Shown piece after piece: positions 4,660-62,830 of a DNA stretch of 64,000 bases; position 1 is the first letter of the stretch, and every line of letters starts with the position of its first letter. Under the pieces are notes generated by a model. The model made no database searches, was not told the DNA's origin, and saw only the letters and a list, made by a program, of their open reading frames with translations. Position numbers and translations under genes: made by a program. This DNA comes from Blastocystis sp. Blastoise. Its lineage: Eukaryota; Protista; Bigyra: Opalinata. The DNA lies in contig JBBPEB010000017.1 of the NCBI GenBank assembly GCA_039096225.1, positions 806,001 to 870,000 of the forward strand, in the 5' to 3' direction.

Positions 4660-6766
4660 CAGTCCTAATAAAATTTTTTTGAACTTGAATAAAATTGTTG
4701 TTCGAAAAAATATTTATGGTTTTTTATAATAAAATTAGTTTCAGTACGATTATATTTACGATTCAAAATAATAAAATTCAATTGAGGATAATATAATTCT
4801 TGTTTTACTTTATTTTTTAAATAAGGATATTTTAAACTTAAAAATGACTTTTCTGCATTCTATATAATACATGAACAAGGGCTAAAGGCATTATTTTCTT
4901 TAAAATATTGGGTCAATATAATGATTACTTATTGATCTACATAAAGAAAGAGATTCAAATTGTTTTGAATTAATATAAGATGCATTTATGGTTTCTATTC
5001 TATTCAGCAGAAAATAATAAAATATTTTTACTAAACTTAATAATTCGGCTATAATAAAACTAAGCTCGCTCTTGAACCATCATTGTCTAATGTATTTATT
5101 TTATTTAAAACTTGTTGAGGATGTAAAGTTAAATAAAAACAAAACATAATTATGAATTCTTTACTTGCAAAATTATTCGTGGAATAGAAAATTACAAATA
5201 ATTAAATAATGTTCTATTACAAAATGAAAAAGAATAATAATCAAAAAAACAAACTCAAATATAAGAATGTTTTAATTAATTTTCTAAAGATCATGTTTAT
5301 CCATAACTTTGGAAAATGTAATAGAATTTGTATGTTCAATACAACGTCTTATTTCATTTCTGGATAATTTATTCCACACATCTTCAAGTTTTTGATAAAA
5401 GTTTTCAAGATTAATCCATGAAATAATGCTACTTTCGACTCTACTTTTCCAAATAGAGAAAATATGTTCAATAGGATTCATTTCTGGAGTGTACGGAGGA
5501 CCAAAAATTACTTTAACACCATATCTTTCGGCAATTTCTAAGAGTTGTTCCATGTGAATTGGAGCATTATCCATGTAGAAACACAAATCATTTTCTGTTT
5601 TTTTGTATTCTTTAATACATTTTTCAAAAAACTCTAAAAAAATAGCTCCATTAACAGAGCATCCAAAGATTTCTGCATATCCATTTCCATTTGAAGATAT
5701 TGTAGCGATAGCAGTAACTGGTAAACGTTTGGAAACTGTATGATAATAAATTTTTTGATTTTTAAAACCCCATCCTTTTTGAGCATAATTGTTAAAACCC
5801 CAATGAACCTCATCTAAATAAACCATGCAAGTACCACGTTGTTTTATTCTGAATACTTCTTTAAAAACTTCAATTCTAAGTTTCTTATTTTCATCATTAT
5901 TAGATGCTTTTCCTCGAGGGTAGAGTCGTGTAACGGAAAACGTTTTGCCAATATGCTCACACATTAACGTGCTATGCATATGCTTTTGAACAGTTGAAGA
6001 GCTGCATATTGGAGTGATTGTGGAATCTTGTCTTAATCTATCAACCTCCTCAATCATAGCTTTTCTTTTTTCTTCGGTGACATCATATGAATCGTCACTA
6101 AGAATATCAGCTTCAGAAGGATTTGGGTTGGATAAAACTAAAACAACATCCTTGACATGAAACTTTGGATTGATGAAAAACATGTTTTTGATGCGTATTG
6201 ACATCTGTCTTGTGATTATGACCTTAGGACCTGTTTTCTTTTTTTCCTTGATAAGTGATTCTCCATTGACCATTTTTTTCATAAATCTTTTTGCACAGCC
6301 TTCCGTAATCGGTAGCATTAAAGCATAATCCTTAGCAGTCCGCTTGAATCCGTGAATTGTAAAGAGTCTTTGGAACTCTTTCTTGACATCATCACTGATA
6401 GAAGTTTTTTTGTAACTTCTCCTTTGTTCGTTTTGCCATTGCTCGTCTTTACGTGGTCTTCCTCTTCCTCTACGTGGTACTTCAACAACTTGATTAAGGG
6501 AATCTCGATATTGAAAAAGGGCTGAAGTTGAAAGAGGTGTTTCACCCTGCTGGTCATCGTTTGAATCACTCATTGAAAATAAATCTAATAGTTGTAAGAG
6601 CTTATTTAAAAAATAAAGTAAAACAAGAATTATATTATCCTCAATTGAATTTTATTATTTTGAATCGTAAATATAATCGTACTGAAACTAATTTTATTAT
6701 AAAAAACCATAAATATTTTTTCGAACAACAATTTTATTCAAGTTCAAAAAAATTTTATTAGGACTG
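4660..6766 (-). mobile_element. Complete IS630/Tc1/mariner-superfamily DNA transposon, 2,107 bp, 166-bp TIRs, TA target-site duplication
   Basis: 4660-4825 (CAGTCCTAATAAAA...AAATAAG) is the reverse complement of 6601-6766 (CTTATTT...TTTTATTAGGACTG). TA lies at 4658-4659 and 6767-6768. An intact transposase lies inside. Confidence 0.97.
5284..6573 (-). CDS. DDE transposase (IS630/Tc1-like, D,D33E) with N-terminal AT-hook, 429 aa, intronless
   Basis: VYLDEVHW ... FYMDNAPIH ... PPYTPEMNPIEHIFSIWK; AT-hook PRRGRGRPRK. Confidence 0.93.
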   Translation of the reverse strand: MSDSNDDQQGETPLSTSALFQYRDSLNQVVEVPRRGRGRPRKDEQWQNEQRRSYKKTSISDDVKKEFQRLFTIHGFKRTAKDYALMLPITEGCAKRFMKKMVNGESLIKEKKKTGPKVIITRQMSIRIKNMFFINPKFHVKDVVLVLSNPNPSEADILSDDSYDVTEEKRKAMIEEVDRLRQDSTITPICSSSTVQKHMHSTLMCEHIGKTFSVTRLYPRGKASNNDENKKLRIEVFKEVFRIKQRGTCMVYLDEVHWGFNNYAQKGWGFKNQKIYYHTVSKRLPVTAIATISSNGNGYAEIFGCSVNGAIFLEFFEKCIKEYKKTENDLCFYMDNAPIHMEQLLEIAERYGVKVIFGPPYTPEMNPIEHIFSIWKSRVESSIISWINLENFYQKLEDVWNKLSRNEIRRCIEHTNSITFSKVMDKHDL

Positions 6767-9165: not shown

Positions 9166-23502
<14,337 letters not shown>

Positions 23503-35020: not shown

Positions 35021-35445
35021 TTATAAAGAGAGTATACAATCTAGATACTTTGAGACAGATATTGATAATGACTTTCTCTTTTCTATATGTATATATGAAA
35101 TATATTGTATAATGCATATAAATTTTATAATATTTATGAAAAAAAAATATATTATAAGTTTTATTCTATTGAAAGAATAATATAATAATAAATTATTTTT
35201 ATTGAAAAAATAATATAATAATTTTTTTTTATTGAAAAAATAATATAATAATAAATTATTTTTATTGAAAAAATAATATAATAATAAATTATTTTTTATT
35301 GAAAAAATAATATAATAATAAATTATATATACGTATAATAAGTTTTTGATATTCTTGGTCCATATTTGACTTTGGAAGTAGGGGAATAAGACGATCAAAT
35401 AATTCAAATAACTGATCAATTAATGTTATAGGAAGAGATGTTGTC

Positions 35446-35511
<66 letters not shown>

Positions 35512-37173
35512 AGTATATATATACATTAATTGAACCATAATTTACATGTTGTTCATATAAATCGACCTATAAATATTATTATGATTATGATAATGCTTAT
35601 TATTATTATTATGATGTTTATTATGATTATGATAATGCTTATTATTATATACAAAATTAGCAGCCTCAATGATGCGTCGATAACGAATGCACGTGCTTAA
35701 AATGGATCGAATAGACGGAGAAGATGGGAAATCAGGTATAGTAAGAGAGAACCATGCAGGTAAAGGATAATCAGGATAATGCTCAAAATATTCTTCAAGG
35801 AATAGCACTTCTGGTTCTATAGTATTTTGATTATTTGAATTGATTGTCTATATAATAATTATAATAGAATAATATATAATCATCATCATATTAATATGAA
35901 AATAGAATGAGTAGAAAAAAAATAAATACCTTAAATAAATGAATAATAACCGTGGGAACTGGCGATGTTTCAGTCAAATGTTCTTCTTCATTCGATATGA
36001 AATAATGAATATCTTTTGTAACATTAAAGAATCGTTTCAATAAGAATCGAATGATTGTACGGATACTATTCTTAATGGAAATAGTACGTTTGGATACTTC
36101 CCATGTAGATATAGAATATAATAATTCAAAACATTGATCATATTTATATTCCTACATATATAGGAGTCAAGAATAGTATAGAAGAGTATTATATTATATA
36201 ATAAATATTATATGGTGAAATATAATGAGTATTATTATTATTAGTTATATTATTATGAAGATTATGATTATATATATATTCGTCTAATAGATCAATTAAA
36301 AGAGTGTCTACGGATTTGAATTGAATTGGACCACCAGCCACGTGCTTGCGATAGATGAACTCGAAATAATAACGAGAGGCAGAAGAAGACTATATAGAAT
36401 AACTCTAGTGATAACTCTAGTAATAATAATAAATATAAATATAATAAGTATAATAATAATAATAATAATAAATATAAATATAAATATAAATATAAATATA
36501 AATATAATAATAATAATAAATACAAGTGACTGACATATAGAGTAAAGAAGAGTGTAATAAGTATCCAGTTTGCGGATGAAATCGTCTGACTTCGGCTGAT
36601 TCTCTGTTTCAGTCACTAAACGAATAATATAATCCAACATGGTATTATATGCCATCTGTACATTCTTATACTTCATATAGAGAAGAAAGAGGACAAGATA
36701 TGTAGAGGGACTCAACAAATTATAGACTCCATTTTCGCGGGAAACAACAGGGGATACGCGGGCATTTTCAGCCAATTCACAGTATATATAAGGTAACAAT
36801 TCCTATATATAAATATATATAGTTCGATATAAAAATATATATAGTTCTCTACATAAATATATATATAGTTATATATACTCCAAAATTTGATTGTTTAATA
36901 AATTGTTGTTGCTTTGATTTTAAAACTTGATATACAAAAGAATGTATATATTTAGATATATCCCCACGGGGATAGAATAATTTGAGAGATATTAAAGCAT
37001 TTGAGTAATCTTCCAAATTGAGATAGGAATAAAATAACTATATATATATATATATAGTTATATATGTAAAATACATTGGTATTTATTCTTAAAGAAAGGT
37101 CTGGAATAGTATTCTCCTGAAATTGAGGGTCCTGAGACAATAATAAATAATGATTATAATATGTAATCACTTG

Positions 37174-37253
<80 letters not shown>

Positions 37254-38022
37254 TATAATTCTTATGGAAGAATAAGTTGTCGATGTAGTTACAATATAAA
37301 TCACCAATATTAATATCCTATATATATAGTTATATAGTTATATATATATAGTTATATAGTTATATATATATAGTTATATAGTTATATATATATAGTTATA
37401 TAGTTATATATATATAGTTATATAGTTATATATATAGTTATATATAGTTATATATATATAGTTATATACCTTCTTAGAGAATGTGATATACAGATCCAAA
37501 TAAAATAACGATAGGAATGCATAATCATGAGTAGAATCATCAAGATTTGTTCGTTGCAAATAAAATGACGATATATACTTATATAAAACACAAAGATCAT
37601 CATGAATATCTATATTCATGATTAAATATAACAAATAAGATTCCAAACGACGGGAATAAGTGAAATTTACACTATTTTGCAGTAAATAATCGTAGAAATT
37701 CTATATTCATATAATATATCACATTAATTACAAATAAAGTATATAATTAAATATATATATATATATACCATAAATATAGTGTCACCTATAGGATGATGAC
37801 AGAAGAAAGAACTCAACAGATATATATGCATTGTAGAAGGGATCTATAACCGCGGTAATACGCATTATAATATATATATATATATACATATGTATATTTC
37901 TGGAGATATTTATTTATGAAAATACTTGTATAATGACTCAAAAGTGAATACTTATAATAAGGAGAAACAGGAAATTCATTCTTAATATAACGACAAGACG
38001 AAAGGAAAGATAAACTTTGAAT

Positions 38023-38108
<86 letters not shown>

Positions 38109-38630
38109 AAGAATTGAATAAAGTAGATTTTTAAGATTTGTTGAGATTTCTAATACTTGTTGTGTATCTTTATTTTCTTCTTGATTCCCACGGGAAAACG
38201 AAGAATTGATAGTACACACAGTAAGGAATAAAGAGAGGAACTGGGGAAATAACGAGTAACACGTCCAAAGGCCGTTACGAATCACACTGTGTGATAAAAT
38301 AGGTGACGCACTCAGCACGTGACCGGATACAGGTAATGGCACTGCAGGATTTCTAAATTGATCTACGTATTGATATAGTTGTGGTAACAGAGTTAATAAA
38401 TTATGAGTATTTCCGATAATCGCAGTTATTTCATTATAAACACGTTCTGCTTCCATATCTCCCACGGGAATCAACTCCTTTCGTAAATAAGAAGATACAA
38501 CCTCCTATATATATATATAATATATATTATATACATTATATATATATATACATTAACAAGTGTGATTGTAGATGTCCTCCTTTTTCTATTCAGAGGCAGG
38601 ATGGTAAGAGATATATTCAAAGAAGAATTC

Positions 38631-38672
<42 letters not shown>

Positions 38673-38843
38673 TTGTATTTGAAATGAGAAGCAGAAGGAG
38701 GTATTTATAAACGAACGAAGACTCTTCTCCAATAAAGAATCTATATATATAATAAGAAAGAGAAAGAACGATTATATATATATATAATAAGAGAAAGCAA
38801 AGAATGATTATATATATATATATAATAAGAGAGAGAAAGAATG

Positions 38844-38878
<35 letters not shown>

Positions 38879-39362
38879 TTTCAACAGGATAATAACCATA
38901 TTCGTCCGTTAAAGATAAAACAGATATCACGTGATCTCGTAACATATATAATCCATTCAGTGACGCACCTTGGAACACAATTAATTTAGAGGGTATAAGG
39001 TATTGTTTATATTGGTTTATCATATCTTTCAGTATACTATTGTATCTATATATATAGTTTGTTAAATAACTAGTAATTTCTTGTGTTATTTCTTCTTTTA
39101 GAACAGCATCAGCGTTTGTACCCATAGAAGGAGAAATATAGAGATCCCCGTGGGAAAACTGAGATAAATGGGAAGGACATGTTGGGAAAGAAGAAGATAA
39201 ACATTTATGAACATTTAAATGCGTAGGAATAATGGGTGATCCATGAAGAGTAGAAAAATAATTCTCTAAAAATGATTGGTCGAATCGTTCTCCGAAGATA
39301 TAATCATAGAACGCGTCATCAATTGCATTTGTCATCAATTCAACAGAATCCAACTATATGTA

Positions 39363-39394
<32 letters not shown>

Positions 39395-39758
39395 CTTCTT
39401 GTTTGAATAGTTCAGGTAGAGATATTTTCCAGTTATATATATATGTATCGAATCGATTATCTATTAATGGCTATATATATATATATATATATATATATTT
39501 AACGAAAATATATCTATAGAATATAAAGAACATATATATATACTATAAGAGTAGCTTGATAGGATTGATTAGTTTCACGGGAATCAACAGTAGTTACAGT
39601 TAAATATGCACTTGAATCAAGATTATTATGGTAAAGAATAAATAACTCGGAAGTATCTGAAAAGAAGGCAACATCCTTATAATAATACGCGGGAGCTGTG
39701 GCGGGAAATGGAAGGGATAAAGGAGGTATATATGTATACTATATATATATAAATATAA

Positions 39759-39823
<65 letters not shown>

Positions 39824-40294
39824 CGCGAGGAAGTGTGGGTCGTTGAATAGTATTAAGGAACGTGAGAGACGGAGAAGGAGAAGGAGAGAATGTATATAAT
39901 AAACATAGGGATAAATTGTTATCCATAAAAGTGACACAAATAGTGATAAGATATTGATTGTTAACGTAATTAAACGACTTTATAACAGCTGATTCAAGTA
40001 AGGCTTTCGGTCTTAGTTGACATATACTATATATAATAATGAATATAATAATAAATATAATAATAAATAGAATAATACATATATATACCTTTTCAAATAG
40101 AGTATTACTTGATGTTTAAAAAGTGAATATATATAAATTGATTGGTTATTATAGACACTGACAATATACGCGTCATTCTCGAGTGTTGGCGGGAAAGGGT
40201 TGGCTGAAGACGTAGGTATATATGTTGCAGAGAGGAGAGTAGAAGGTCTCTGGAAATATTTGGCGGGAAATAGAATATATATGTAATAAAACAG

Positions 40295-40349
<55 letters not shown>

Positions 40350-41395
40350 GTGTAATCCACATATATAGAGGAGACAGAGGTGTTATATCCTTTGGTATAT
40401 ACACAGGAACAGCAGTAGTAGTAATAATATTAGTATTATTATTATTAATATTAATAGTATTATTAATACTATTAGTATTATTATTATTATTAGAAGAAGA
40501 AGAGAGAGTATATATATATTGAGAGAGATCGGAATAACCATAAAAATAATTCATTCCATCAAGTATTAAGAACTATAAATATATAAATATATATAAATAT
40601 AAATATATACATAAATAAAAATATAAATATATAAATATAAATATAAATATAAATATACTTTTTGAACTTTCGTTTTTGGAATCTTTTTTGAAATAGTAAG
40701 AGAAGGATGACACGCTCTATGTCCACGTGCTAATTCACGTAAATATGTCACACTAAATTATATATATATATATATATATTAATTATAGTATAACATAAAC
40801 TATTCATATATATACTTTTTTTCTTTATATAGAGTATTTTGGAAGATATAAGAATAAACAGATTCTATATATATATATATAGAAAGAGGGAAAAAATAGA
40901 GTTATATATACGGCATGTATGAACATATAATTTTAAGGACACATTATTCATTGTTATTTGAATACCATTCTTCAATATAATTGCTATATGATTAATTAAT
41001 ATATGATAGTAGCACAATATACAGTCAAAATCTAGTTGTATTGTATGTGTTTCCATACTGGAGTATAAATATTGTTCAGAGAGAATTAAAGAATTGCCTT
41101 TTGTTTTCCACATTACAATAATTCTAATAATTAGATTCAATAAAAAACATAATTTATATCATAAACAAACTATATACCCCTGTTGATCGCAAAAAGAATT
41201 GTTGTATGTGGATGGAACAGTAACAAGACCAGAATCGTCTTCAAGAATATCTGTGGCATAATAAGATTCTATTCTTTTAGCGTCTTCATCGTTGTTCATA
41301 ATTGTTTGAAACTTTGTTTCTAAGGATGAAGAGAATTTCTGACTTGGTTTTGACAAATCAAAGTTAAACGACAAGAACTCTTGATAGCGATTCAT
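35021..41395 (-). CDS. NUP160: Nucleoporin Nup160/Nup120-like, many exons
   Basis: C-terminal motifs LAENAR...LYMKYKNVQMAYNTMLDYIIRL, LPAWF...RYRRIIEAANF and LPITLIDQLF match the Nup160 tail as I recall it. The last exon ends at TAA 35021. Not every internal junction was checked. Confidence 0.72.
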
Positions 41396-41648: not shown

Positions 41649-44357
<2,709 letters not shown>

Positions 44358-62247: not shown

Positions 62248-62642
62248 CTTTTATATTAGTATATATCACAACACATATATTCATATATATTATATATTAA
62301 TATAGTTTTCATCACTATATTCATACTCAATTATTATTCATAAACGTATTCCATTTCTTCAAAATATTATGATTCAATTCCCACGGGAATCATCACTATT
62401 TCTTCAAGATCCTGTATGTCACTAATACTTATTCATTTATTAATATACATATATATATAGACATCTATTGCAGAAACGGTTTGGAATTGTATTCCAATCA
62501 TTTTGGCAGCACTGTTCGTCACCATGATTGTGTTCTGTTTCATGATCCGAAAGTATATATTCTGTAAATTCTGTATATTATATATATTTATATATAGATA
62601 TATTTCCCATGTTTTTGAGAGTATTTTTCATACATTTCGAAG

Positions 62643-62682
<40 letters not shown>

Positions 62683-62786: not shown

Positions 62787-62830
<44 letters not shown>

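Follow-up and report, generated by a model that had tools for sequence, protein, structure and literature searches.

In Plasmodium falciparum, introns hold the densest and longest microsatellites, with the AT dinucleotide as the dominant class, and whole-intron cases of the form GT(AT)nAG are not described there (PMC6644851). Here, we analyze introns of this form in Blastocystis sp. 'Blastoise', starting from a 64-kb stretch of DNA (positions 806,001 to 870,000 of contig JBBPEB010000017.1, referred to as the window) and, in particular, from a gene on its minus strand that encodes a probable Nup120/Nup160-like protein (referred to as the host gene). The original prediction, made from the letters of the window, held that several introns of this gene consist of nothing but GT(AT)nAG and that they could be defined by hairpin folding or have been born from microsatellites. 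Taken together, our data indicate that they are probably ordinary U2-dependent GT-AG introns in which an (AT)n microsatellite has taken the place of the entire interior. The nearest described case is P. falciparum: both genomes are extremely AT-rich, and splicing in P. falciparum operates with weak internal signals, whereas in 'Blastoise' the repeat fills the intron from GT to AG and the splice consensus is itself part of the repeat.

Two further systems represent functional analogies. In plants, AU-richness is reportedly an intron-recognition signal, a notion that is said to go back to Goodall and Filipowicz in 1989. Like the introns studied here, the UA-rich plant introns are rich in AU internally, have a branch consensus and a pyrimidine tract that are weak or missing, and contrast in GC content with the exons (in the host gene, 12% in introns versus 32% in exons); however, they are heterogeneously AU-rich instead of forming a perfect dinucleotide repeat. 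In teleosts, introns are bridged by complementary (AC)n and (GT)n repeats, and biochemical experiments revealed that the structure is needed and that U2AF2 is dispensable (Lin et al. 2016, PMC4691745). In both fish and Blastocystis, dinucleotide repeats at the intron boundaries are able to pair and draw the splice sites together, but the fish introns employ two distinct repeats, whereas 'Blastoise' has a single self-complementary repeat, no covariation between intron ends, and sister introns with unpaired ends that are annotated as spliced. A structure dependence such as that of the teleost introns appears unlikely. Within the genus, the human Blastocystis subtypes have GC-richer genomes and a sharp intron mode of 30 nucleotides (nt) (PMC5608401; PMC12129017). 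These subtypes resemble the strain analyzed in their intron-rich genes, very short GT-AG introns, and conventional major spliceosome, and they differ in that the host-gene introns of the tortoise isolate measure 37-160 nt and the AG of a 30-nt FARSB unit is passed over as a 3' splice site.

The genome of 'Blastoise', a gut protist isolated from the Russian tortoise, has 33.34 Mb in 34 contigs and a GC content of about 23%. For Rus-B, a Blastocystis from the Russian tortoise, 33.3 Mb, 23.1% GC, and 8547 genes have been reported (Lind et al. 2025, PMC12129017). According to the same article, the assembly was built from long reads, short reads, and Hi-C, and the tortoise isolates have longer introns and contain 11.8-12.7% low-complexity DNA; a term search of this article returned no mention of microsatellites or pure-AT introns. 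The window has a GC content of 23.6% and contains 148 runs of alternating AT with a length of 10 nt or more. Together with an unbiased 200 kb of contig 3, it forms a sample of 264 kb, in which every GT(AT)nAG tract with n of at least 11 was listed. Spliced gene models were searched exon by exon, and the public protein KAK8802125.1 was the sole full-length protein query.

Pure AT introns in the host gene and in conserved genes

On the plus strand, positions 37176-37253, 38026-38105, and 38633-38672 of the window each read C, T(AT)nA, C, which corresponds to GT(AT)nAG on the minus strand. The mapping of KAK8802125.1 onto this strand resulted in 26 exons (3924 nt, equal to 1308 codons) and 25 introns, all 25 of them with GT-AG ends and with lengths of 37-160 nt. 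When the letters were read directly, all pure and nearly pure tracts of the original prediction were found at their positions (Table 1). Three of the pure tracts had been considered introns of the host gene. Two of them, introns 12 and 18, match introns of the public model exactly, whereas the 80-nt tract forms only the 3' part of intron 14, which in the public model has 131 nt (38156-38026) and the donor GTATTAG at 38156. The G residues of intron 12 are located only at its two splice sites. In intron 14, the donors at 38156 and 38105 are 51 nt apart (segment 38106-38156), which corresponds to 17 open codons and leaves the frame unchanged. The two are similar in their predicted pairing with U1, with -7.1 kcal/mol for the inner one (38105) and -6.2 kcal/mol for the annotated one (38156), and may act as in-frame alternative donors.

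The claim that such tracts must be removed to maintain the reading frame is backed by this public annotation and by homology in conserved genes. In the 264-kb sample, eleven GT(AT)nAG tracts reach n = 11 or more. Seven of them, all of at least 30 nt, could be placed, and all seven are inside introns and on the coding strand (4 whole introns and 3 parts of longer introns); none was intergenic or on the wrong strand. The clearest position is that of a pure 76-nt tract in MRE11, whose flanking exons correspond to residues 178-211 and 213-243 of human MRE11. The tract splits the codon of residue 212 (phase 2), and its flanks align without gaps to solved MRE11 structures; the same continuity was observed with other MRE11 chains and in the numbering of Schizosaccharomyces pombe Rad32. 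Because 76 is not a multiple of 3 and the exons align residue for residue, this tract must be excised exactly. In BMS1, a pure 86-nt tract is flanked on both sides by sequence that aligns with Bms1, separated by a short variable linker that differs in length from the human one by at most 2 residues. As judged from this alignment, the 86-nt tract must be removed, with a junction located in the variable linker, so that its exact boundary is left loose.

Two further cases concern composite introns. The 126-nt FARSB intron opens with a complete 30-nt GT(AT)13AG unit; the flanking exons meet at chain residues 509|510, so that the AG closing this unit is skipped, which suggests that a pure unit of 30 nt is too short or has no usable branch-to-AG distance. 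In the other case, a GT(AT)24AG unit (52 nt) is followed directly by GT(AT)6AG (16 nt), and the two apparently make up a single 68-nt intron that precedes an exon with the RNase III signature VLEFLGDA, as judged from a weak Pfam match. A search of the Protein Data Bank (PDB) with the short exons of a further locus (L005, Vps34-like by eye) returned nothing usable. At 8 + 11 loci with pure tracts, a test for open frames leaned toward splicing but was noisy, and its result was set aside because of the short exons and because (AT)n contains no stop in any frame.

For the host gene, the public model provides indirect RNA evidence, since the annotation pipeline favors introns with at least 3 junction reads from RNA sequencing (RNA-seq): it required at least 3 junction reads in STAR, and Mikado was tuned to 'strictly RNA-seq-supported introns' (PMC12129017). 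Precise removal from the mRNA is therefore indicated indirectly, by this RNA-seq-guided model and by the MRE11 and BMS1 homology. Furthermore, a probable RNA data set of the organism contains 0.54 of the sampled words, as compared with 0.22 for a poly(A) gut metatranscriptome; this word content hints at expression and is silent on junctions.

The label 'Nup160' that the gene had received is only partly corroborated. A language-model feature search with KAK8802125.1 returned Nup120/Nup160 clusters with a score of 0.96, and the ten best matches all belonged to this one family. However, neither the host-gene exons nor KAK8802125.1 itself matched any family in a Pfam scan, and a word search with the full protein retrieved only the protein itself and no detectable orthologues. 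The identity as Nup160 is thus plausible from the feature search. A word search with one host-gene exon gave zero matches in the allowed length range, and an exhaustive protein search with one exon gave a single match, namely KAK8802125.1 with 99% identity over the exon. This entry is recorded as 'hypothetical protein WA158_006519 [Blastocystis sp. Blastoise]', and no contig on record that encodes it was found.

The pure introns are not a separate class but the end of a continuum, as seen from the graded AT repeats, the shared ends, and the missing branch consensus across the gene. At the 5' end, 24 of the 25 host-gene introns start with GTAT, 19 with GTATAT, and 13 with GTATATAT; at the 3' end, 18 of 25 close with ATATAG and 13 with ATATATAG. 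It had been stated that most long introns begin with GTATATAT and end with ATATATAG, a description that holds for 13 of 25 in each case. Alternating-AT runs of at least 8 nt account for 38% of all intron bases of the gene, and the alternating AT share reaches 85-91% in introns 10, 13, and 25. The pentamer yUnAy is absent from 6 of 24 introns (3, 10, 12, 13, 18, and 19), and several others have it only far from the 3' splice site. Intron 17 (37318-37469) was omitted from this motif analysis and from the folding and pairing analyses, which thus cover 24 introns.

Table 1. Location of the host gene and of the pure, nearly pure, and composite AT introns
Feature	Coordinates	Strand	Basis or remark
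Host gene, coding range	35292..41395	-	Product KAK8802125.1, WA158_006519, 1308 amino acids, probable Nup120/Nup160-like
Intron 12, pure GT(AT)18AG, 40 nt, phase 0	38633..38672	-	Annotated; frame changes across tract
Intron 18, pure GT(AT)37AG, 78 nt, phase 1	37176..37253	-	Annotated intron exactly
Pure GT(AT)38AG tract, 80 nt	38026..38105	-	3' part of annotated intron 14
Intron 10, nearly pure, 42 nt, two internal C, no yUnAy	39354..39395	-	Annotated
Intron 13, nearly pure, 47 nt, no yUnAy	38505..38551	-	Annotated
Intron 25, 80 nt, 91% alternating AT	35445..35524	-	Annotated
Predicted intron, pure GT(AT)17AG, 38 nt, 5' part of HECT-ligase gene	62791..62828	+	Open-frame logic
Predicted intron, nearly pure, 40 nt, GTATGT and AT repeat to AG, one internal G	62642..62681	+	Same HECT gene
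MRE11 pure tract, 76 nt	L031:8306-8381	-	200-kb sample
BMS1 pure tract, 86 nt	L022:3791-3876	-	200-kb sample
FARSB intron, 126 nt	L016:6564-6689 (G000:C3:136564-136689)	+	200-kb sample
Tandem units of 52 and 16 nt	L027:7429-7496 (G000:C3:247429-247496)	-	200-kb sample

In the HECT-ligase gene, a neighbor of the host gene, the excision of 62791-62828 and its neighbors leaves one frame open across four short exons, whereas the other two start frames meet stops.

At the level of the whole genome, GT(AT)nAG tracts of 22, 28, and 38 nt were found at 98, 37, and 30 sites, respectively, and the 40-nt form GT(AT)18AG at 35 sites. The corresponding numbers for a reversed-pattern control were 11, 6, 3, and 3. 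This excess of 6- to 12-fold is similar at all four lengths and, for this reason, is on its own no proof of selection for whole introns. A better test is provided by tracts with the flanks G..C and C..G. At 40 nt, these were observed at 7 and 13 sites, respectively (reversed-pattern control, 0 in both cases), and the 35 GT..AG sites compare with about 19 expected from independent flanks and strand symmetry, an approximately 1.8-fold excess. Among short tracts (8-25 nt) of the sample, there were 42 GT..AG-type sites versus about 68 expected from independent flanks, and the genomic site count no longer drops between 28 and 40 nt. A second population, consisting of whole introns from roughly 36 nt up, fits both this deficit and this plateau. 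Scaled from 4-8 per 264 kb, the genome would contain, as a rough estimate, 500-1000 whole pure-AT introns.

Splice signals and spliceosomal components

All of these introns, pure ones included, carry GT...AG ends on the coding strand, as is typical of U2-type introns. The 5' end of U1 small nuclear RNA (snRNA) is canonical (AUACUUACCU), and so are U6, with ACAGAGA, and U2 (...AAGUGUAGUAUCUGUUC...), in which the GUAGUA box is intact. A divergence of the branch-pairing region of U2 and of SF1 had been raised as a point to inspect; the U2 region is canonical, and an SF1 helix-hairpin domain is encoded on the same contig. The 5' splice sites are complementary to U1 and U6, as judged from these canonical RNAs and the predicted pairing. 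In the case of U1, GUAUAUAU can form pairs through its positions +1 to +3 and +6 to +8, with a predicted energy of -7.1 kcal/mol as compared with -12.7 kcal/mol for the consensus. The internal signals differ from those of a textbook intron: the pure introns contain neither a branch site of the yUnAy or UACUAAC type nor a polypyrimidine tract, since they consist of alternating UA without a pyrimidine run. Both absences, claimed earlier, were borne out by the motif scan and the letters. By inspection, GUGUAGUAU of U2 is able to pair with an alternating UA sequence in every 2-nt register, by A-U and G-U pairs and with a single bulged A. This pairing demonstrates no more than that (UA)n may be an acceptable degenerate branch region, permissive rather than specific.

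Other intron classes were also considered. A U12-type intron, with an (A/G)TATCCTT donor and a TCCTTAAC branch site, was excluded, as the pure tracts are devoid of any C. An origin from introners or transposons was excluded as well: the interior consists only of a dinucleotide repeat of variable length, and no flanking duplications are visible at the junctions.

These data are compatible with the following scheme. In a genome with 23% GC, the preferred splice contexts would themselves be alternating AT, with GTATAT(AT) on the donor side and (AT)ATATAG on the acceptor side. Because the splice-site consensus is itself alternating AT, replication slippage could lengthen the repeat inward from both intron ends, and in short introns the two repeats would meet to give GT(AT)nAG. 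We thus infer that the tracts arose by slippage. Canonical U1 would then pair with GUAUAUAU at the two blocks given above, and the U2 GUAGUA box (GUGUAGUAU) would take a weak branch site within (UA)n, where we place the branch adenosine tentatively. The first G past the tract would provide the AG, and the G-free interior would offer no competing GT or AG. A pyrimidine tract or a strong branch consensus is apparently not needed in this organism, as may also be the case for many sister introns.

Several observations weigh against this explanation. The predicted duplex of U2 with (UA)10 amounts to -2.6 kcal/mol and is no better than that of 36% of random A10U10 sequences, and the proposed bulged A lies two positions from its usual site in that helix when it forms on a canonical branch sequence. 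The search for U2AF65 yielded candidates only at the level of the RRM, none of them secure. The predicted hairpins, with up to -44.5 kcal/mol, may have some effect on splicing, be it helpful or harmful, and for the introns of the window itself, splicing is deduced from the public model and from frame logic.

Hairpins, intron birth, and assembly as alternative explanations

The original prediction also proposed that (AU)n, being self-complementary, could form a hairpin that juxtaposes the splice sites. Such a hairpin would replace or assist branch-site and U2AF recognition. The capacity to fold is evident from the predictions. Every pure tract is predicted to form a full-length hairpin, with energies of about -15 to -45 kcal/mol (-14.8 for the 40-nt intron 12, -37.4 for the 78-nt intron 18, and -44.5 for the 76-nt tract), and the common ends GUAUAU... 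and ...AUAUAG are mutually complementary. The teleost introns provide a precedent for structure-dependent introns (PMC4691745). The pairing of the first with the last 16 nt of each intron, however, was not specific: over 24 introns, the native ends had a mean of -5.3 kcal/mol versus -4.7 kcal/mol for swapped ends (p = 0.09), and when only the 16 non-pure introns with 60 nt or more were compared, p was 0.29. Six host-gene introns have an end pairing of approximately 0 kcal/mol, yet are annotated as spliced in the same gene, and the interruptions of the nearly pure intron 10 (42 nt) are uncompensated, its fold being no better than that of shuffled sequences (z = -0.74). A complete hairpin would also bury the targets of U1, U6, and U2, helices composed of AU only open easily, and the snRNAs and SF1 are conventional. 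Since the end pairing is nonspecific, six introns are unpaired, and the interruptions are uncompensated, there is no support for splicing defined by structure, and the hairpin would be dispensable. In yeast introns, folding of the segment that separates the branch point from the 3' splice site can reduce the effective distance. A fold of this type could matter for intron 25, where the only TACTAAT-like motif is found 65 nt before the 3' splice site. On balance, we consider a definition of these introns by structure unlikely. We assign a similarly low probability to the version according to which a G-free (UA)n spacer of at least about 36 nt between GU and AG suffices as an intron, with the hairpin actively joining the splice sites and with a branch choice that is register-free and assisted by structure.

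The tracts might instead be newly born introns, in which an exonic (AT)n microsatellite flanked by G...G came to be recognized as an intron. In favor of such a birth, (AT)n is open in all three frames (Ile-Tyr repeats), so that its expansion would bring no immediate stops, and the fast-evolving host gene lacks a detectable orthologue in which an old intron position could be shown. However, AT runs of this genome are concentrated in introns (38% of the host-gene intron bases; GC content of 12% versus 32% in exons), and the pure tracts grade into partly repetitive and composite introns that contain units of 30 and 52 nt within longer introns. In addition, the gapless MRE11 flanks fit an inserted or long-standing intron but not an intronized coding repeat. 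Birth from microsatellites would be less likely than the overwriting of old introns, and we regard it as quite improbable. An artifact, in the form of assembly collapse, mis-polished low-complexity DNA, or gene models that force introns over untranslatable repeats, appears very improbable. Assembly and polishing are difficult for long AT repeats, and the exact repeat numbers may well be wrong. However, the same architecture occurs at hundreds of genomic sites in an assembly that combines long reads, short reads, and Hi-C (PMC12129017), the homology of MRE11, BMS1, and FARSB demands a noncoding segment at exactly these places, and the frame shifts caused by 40, 76, and 86 nt cannot be read through. 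The replacement of the interior of ordinary U2-dependent introns by an AT microsatellite thus remains the explanation that we favor.

Other features of the window and biological significance

The host gene contains further repetitive introns. Intron 11 (38741-38878, minus strand, 138 nt) is a minisatellite of three units of about 44 nt, each with an AT run followed by a CT-rich stretch, and intron 17 (minus strand, 152 nt) is built from tandem copies of a 22-nt unit. Another element of the window is a GC-rich near-palindrome, CCCGTGGG, which has a TTCCC-RY-GGGAA context and is present in 7 copies, as compared with 0.01 expected. Four copies are in exons of the Nup-like gene (36963-36970, 38187-38194, 38461-38468, and 39147-39154), and the others are at 11387, 60164, and 62380; the 200-kb sample contains 9 further copies of CCCGTGGG and many of CCCGCGGG. 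Elsewhere in the window, a (TAT)n array of about 155 copies with 96% matches (42450-42911) adjoins the start of an Omp85/Sam50-like gene, identified by a Pfam match at 43562-44197 on the plus strand. An unbroken open reading frame (ORF) of 4363 codons is present at 9166-22257 on the minus strand, whereas other genes of the genome are densely interrupted; a Pfam scan of its last 1499 residues (9166-13665) revealed no family. An intact ORF of 429 amino acids at 5284-6573 on the minus strand encodes a DDE_3 transposase domain (E = 7.6e-19).

If confirmed by read-level and lariat data, the introns described here would be among those with the lowest information content that are accurately removed by a conventional major spliceosome, as they consist of two G residues and a periodic AU spacer, with neither a branch consensus nor a pyrimidine tract. 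Since the organism can be cultured, it would become testable how the branch adenosine and the 3' splice site are chosen among equivalent 2-nt registers. The tracts of the 264-kb sample form a natural length series of 36-86 nt for the study of the minimum intron size, with the 30-nt FARSB unit being skipped. Strains are expected to differ widely in repeat length, and software for gene prediction must tolerate such introns. These look like ordinary introns that were overrun by an AT microsatellite and not like a new splicing system, which would imply that AT bias and slippage can erase the content of an intron while its splicing persists.

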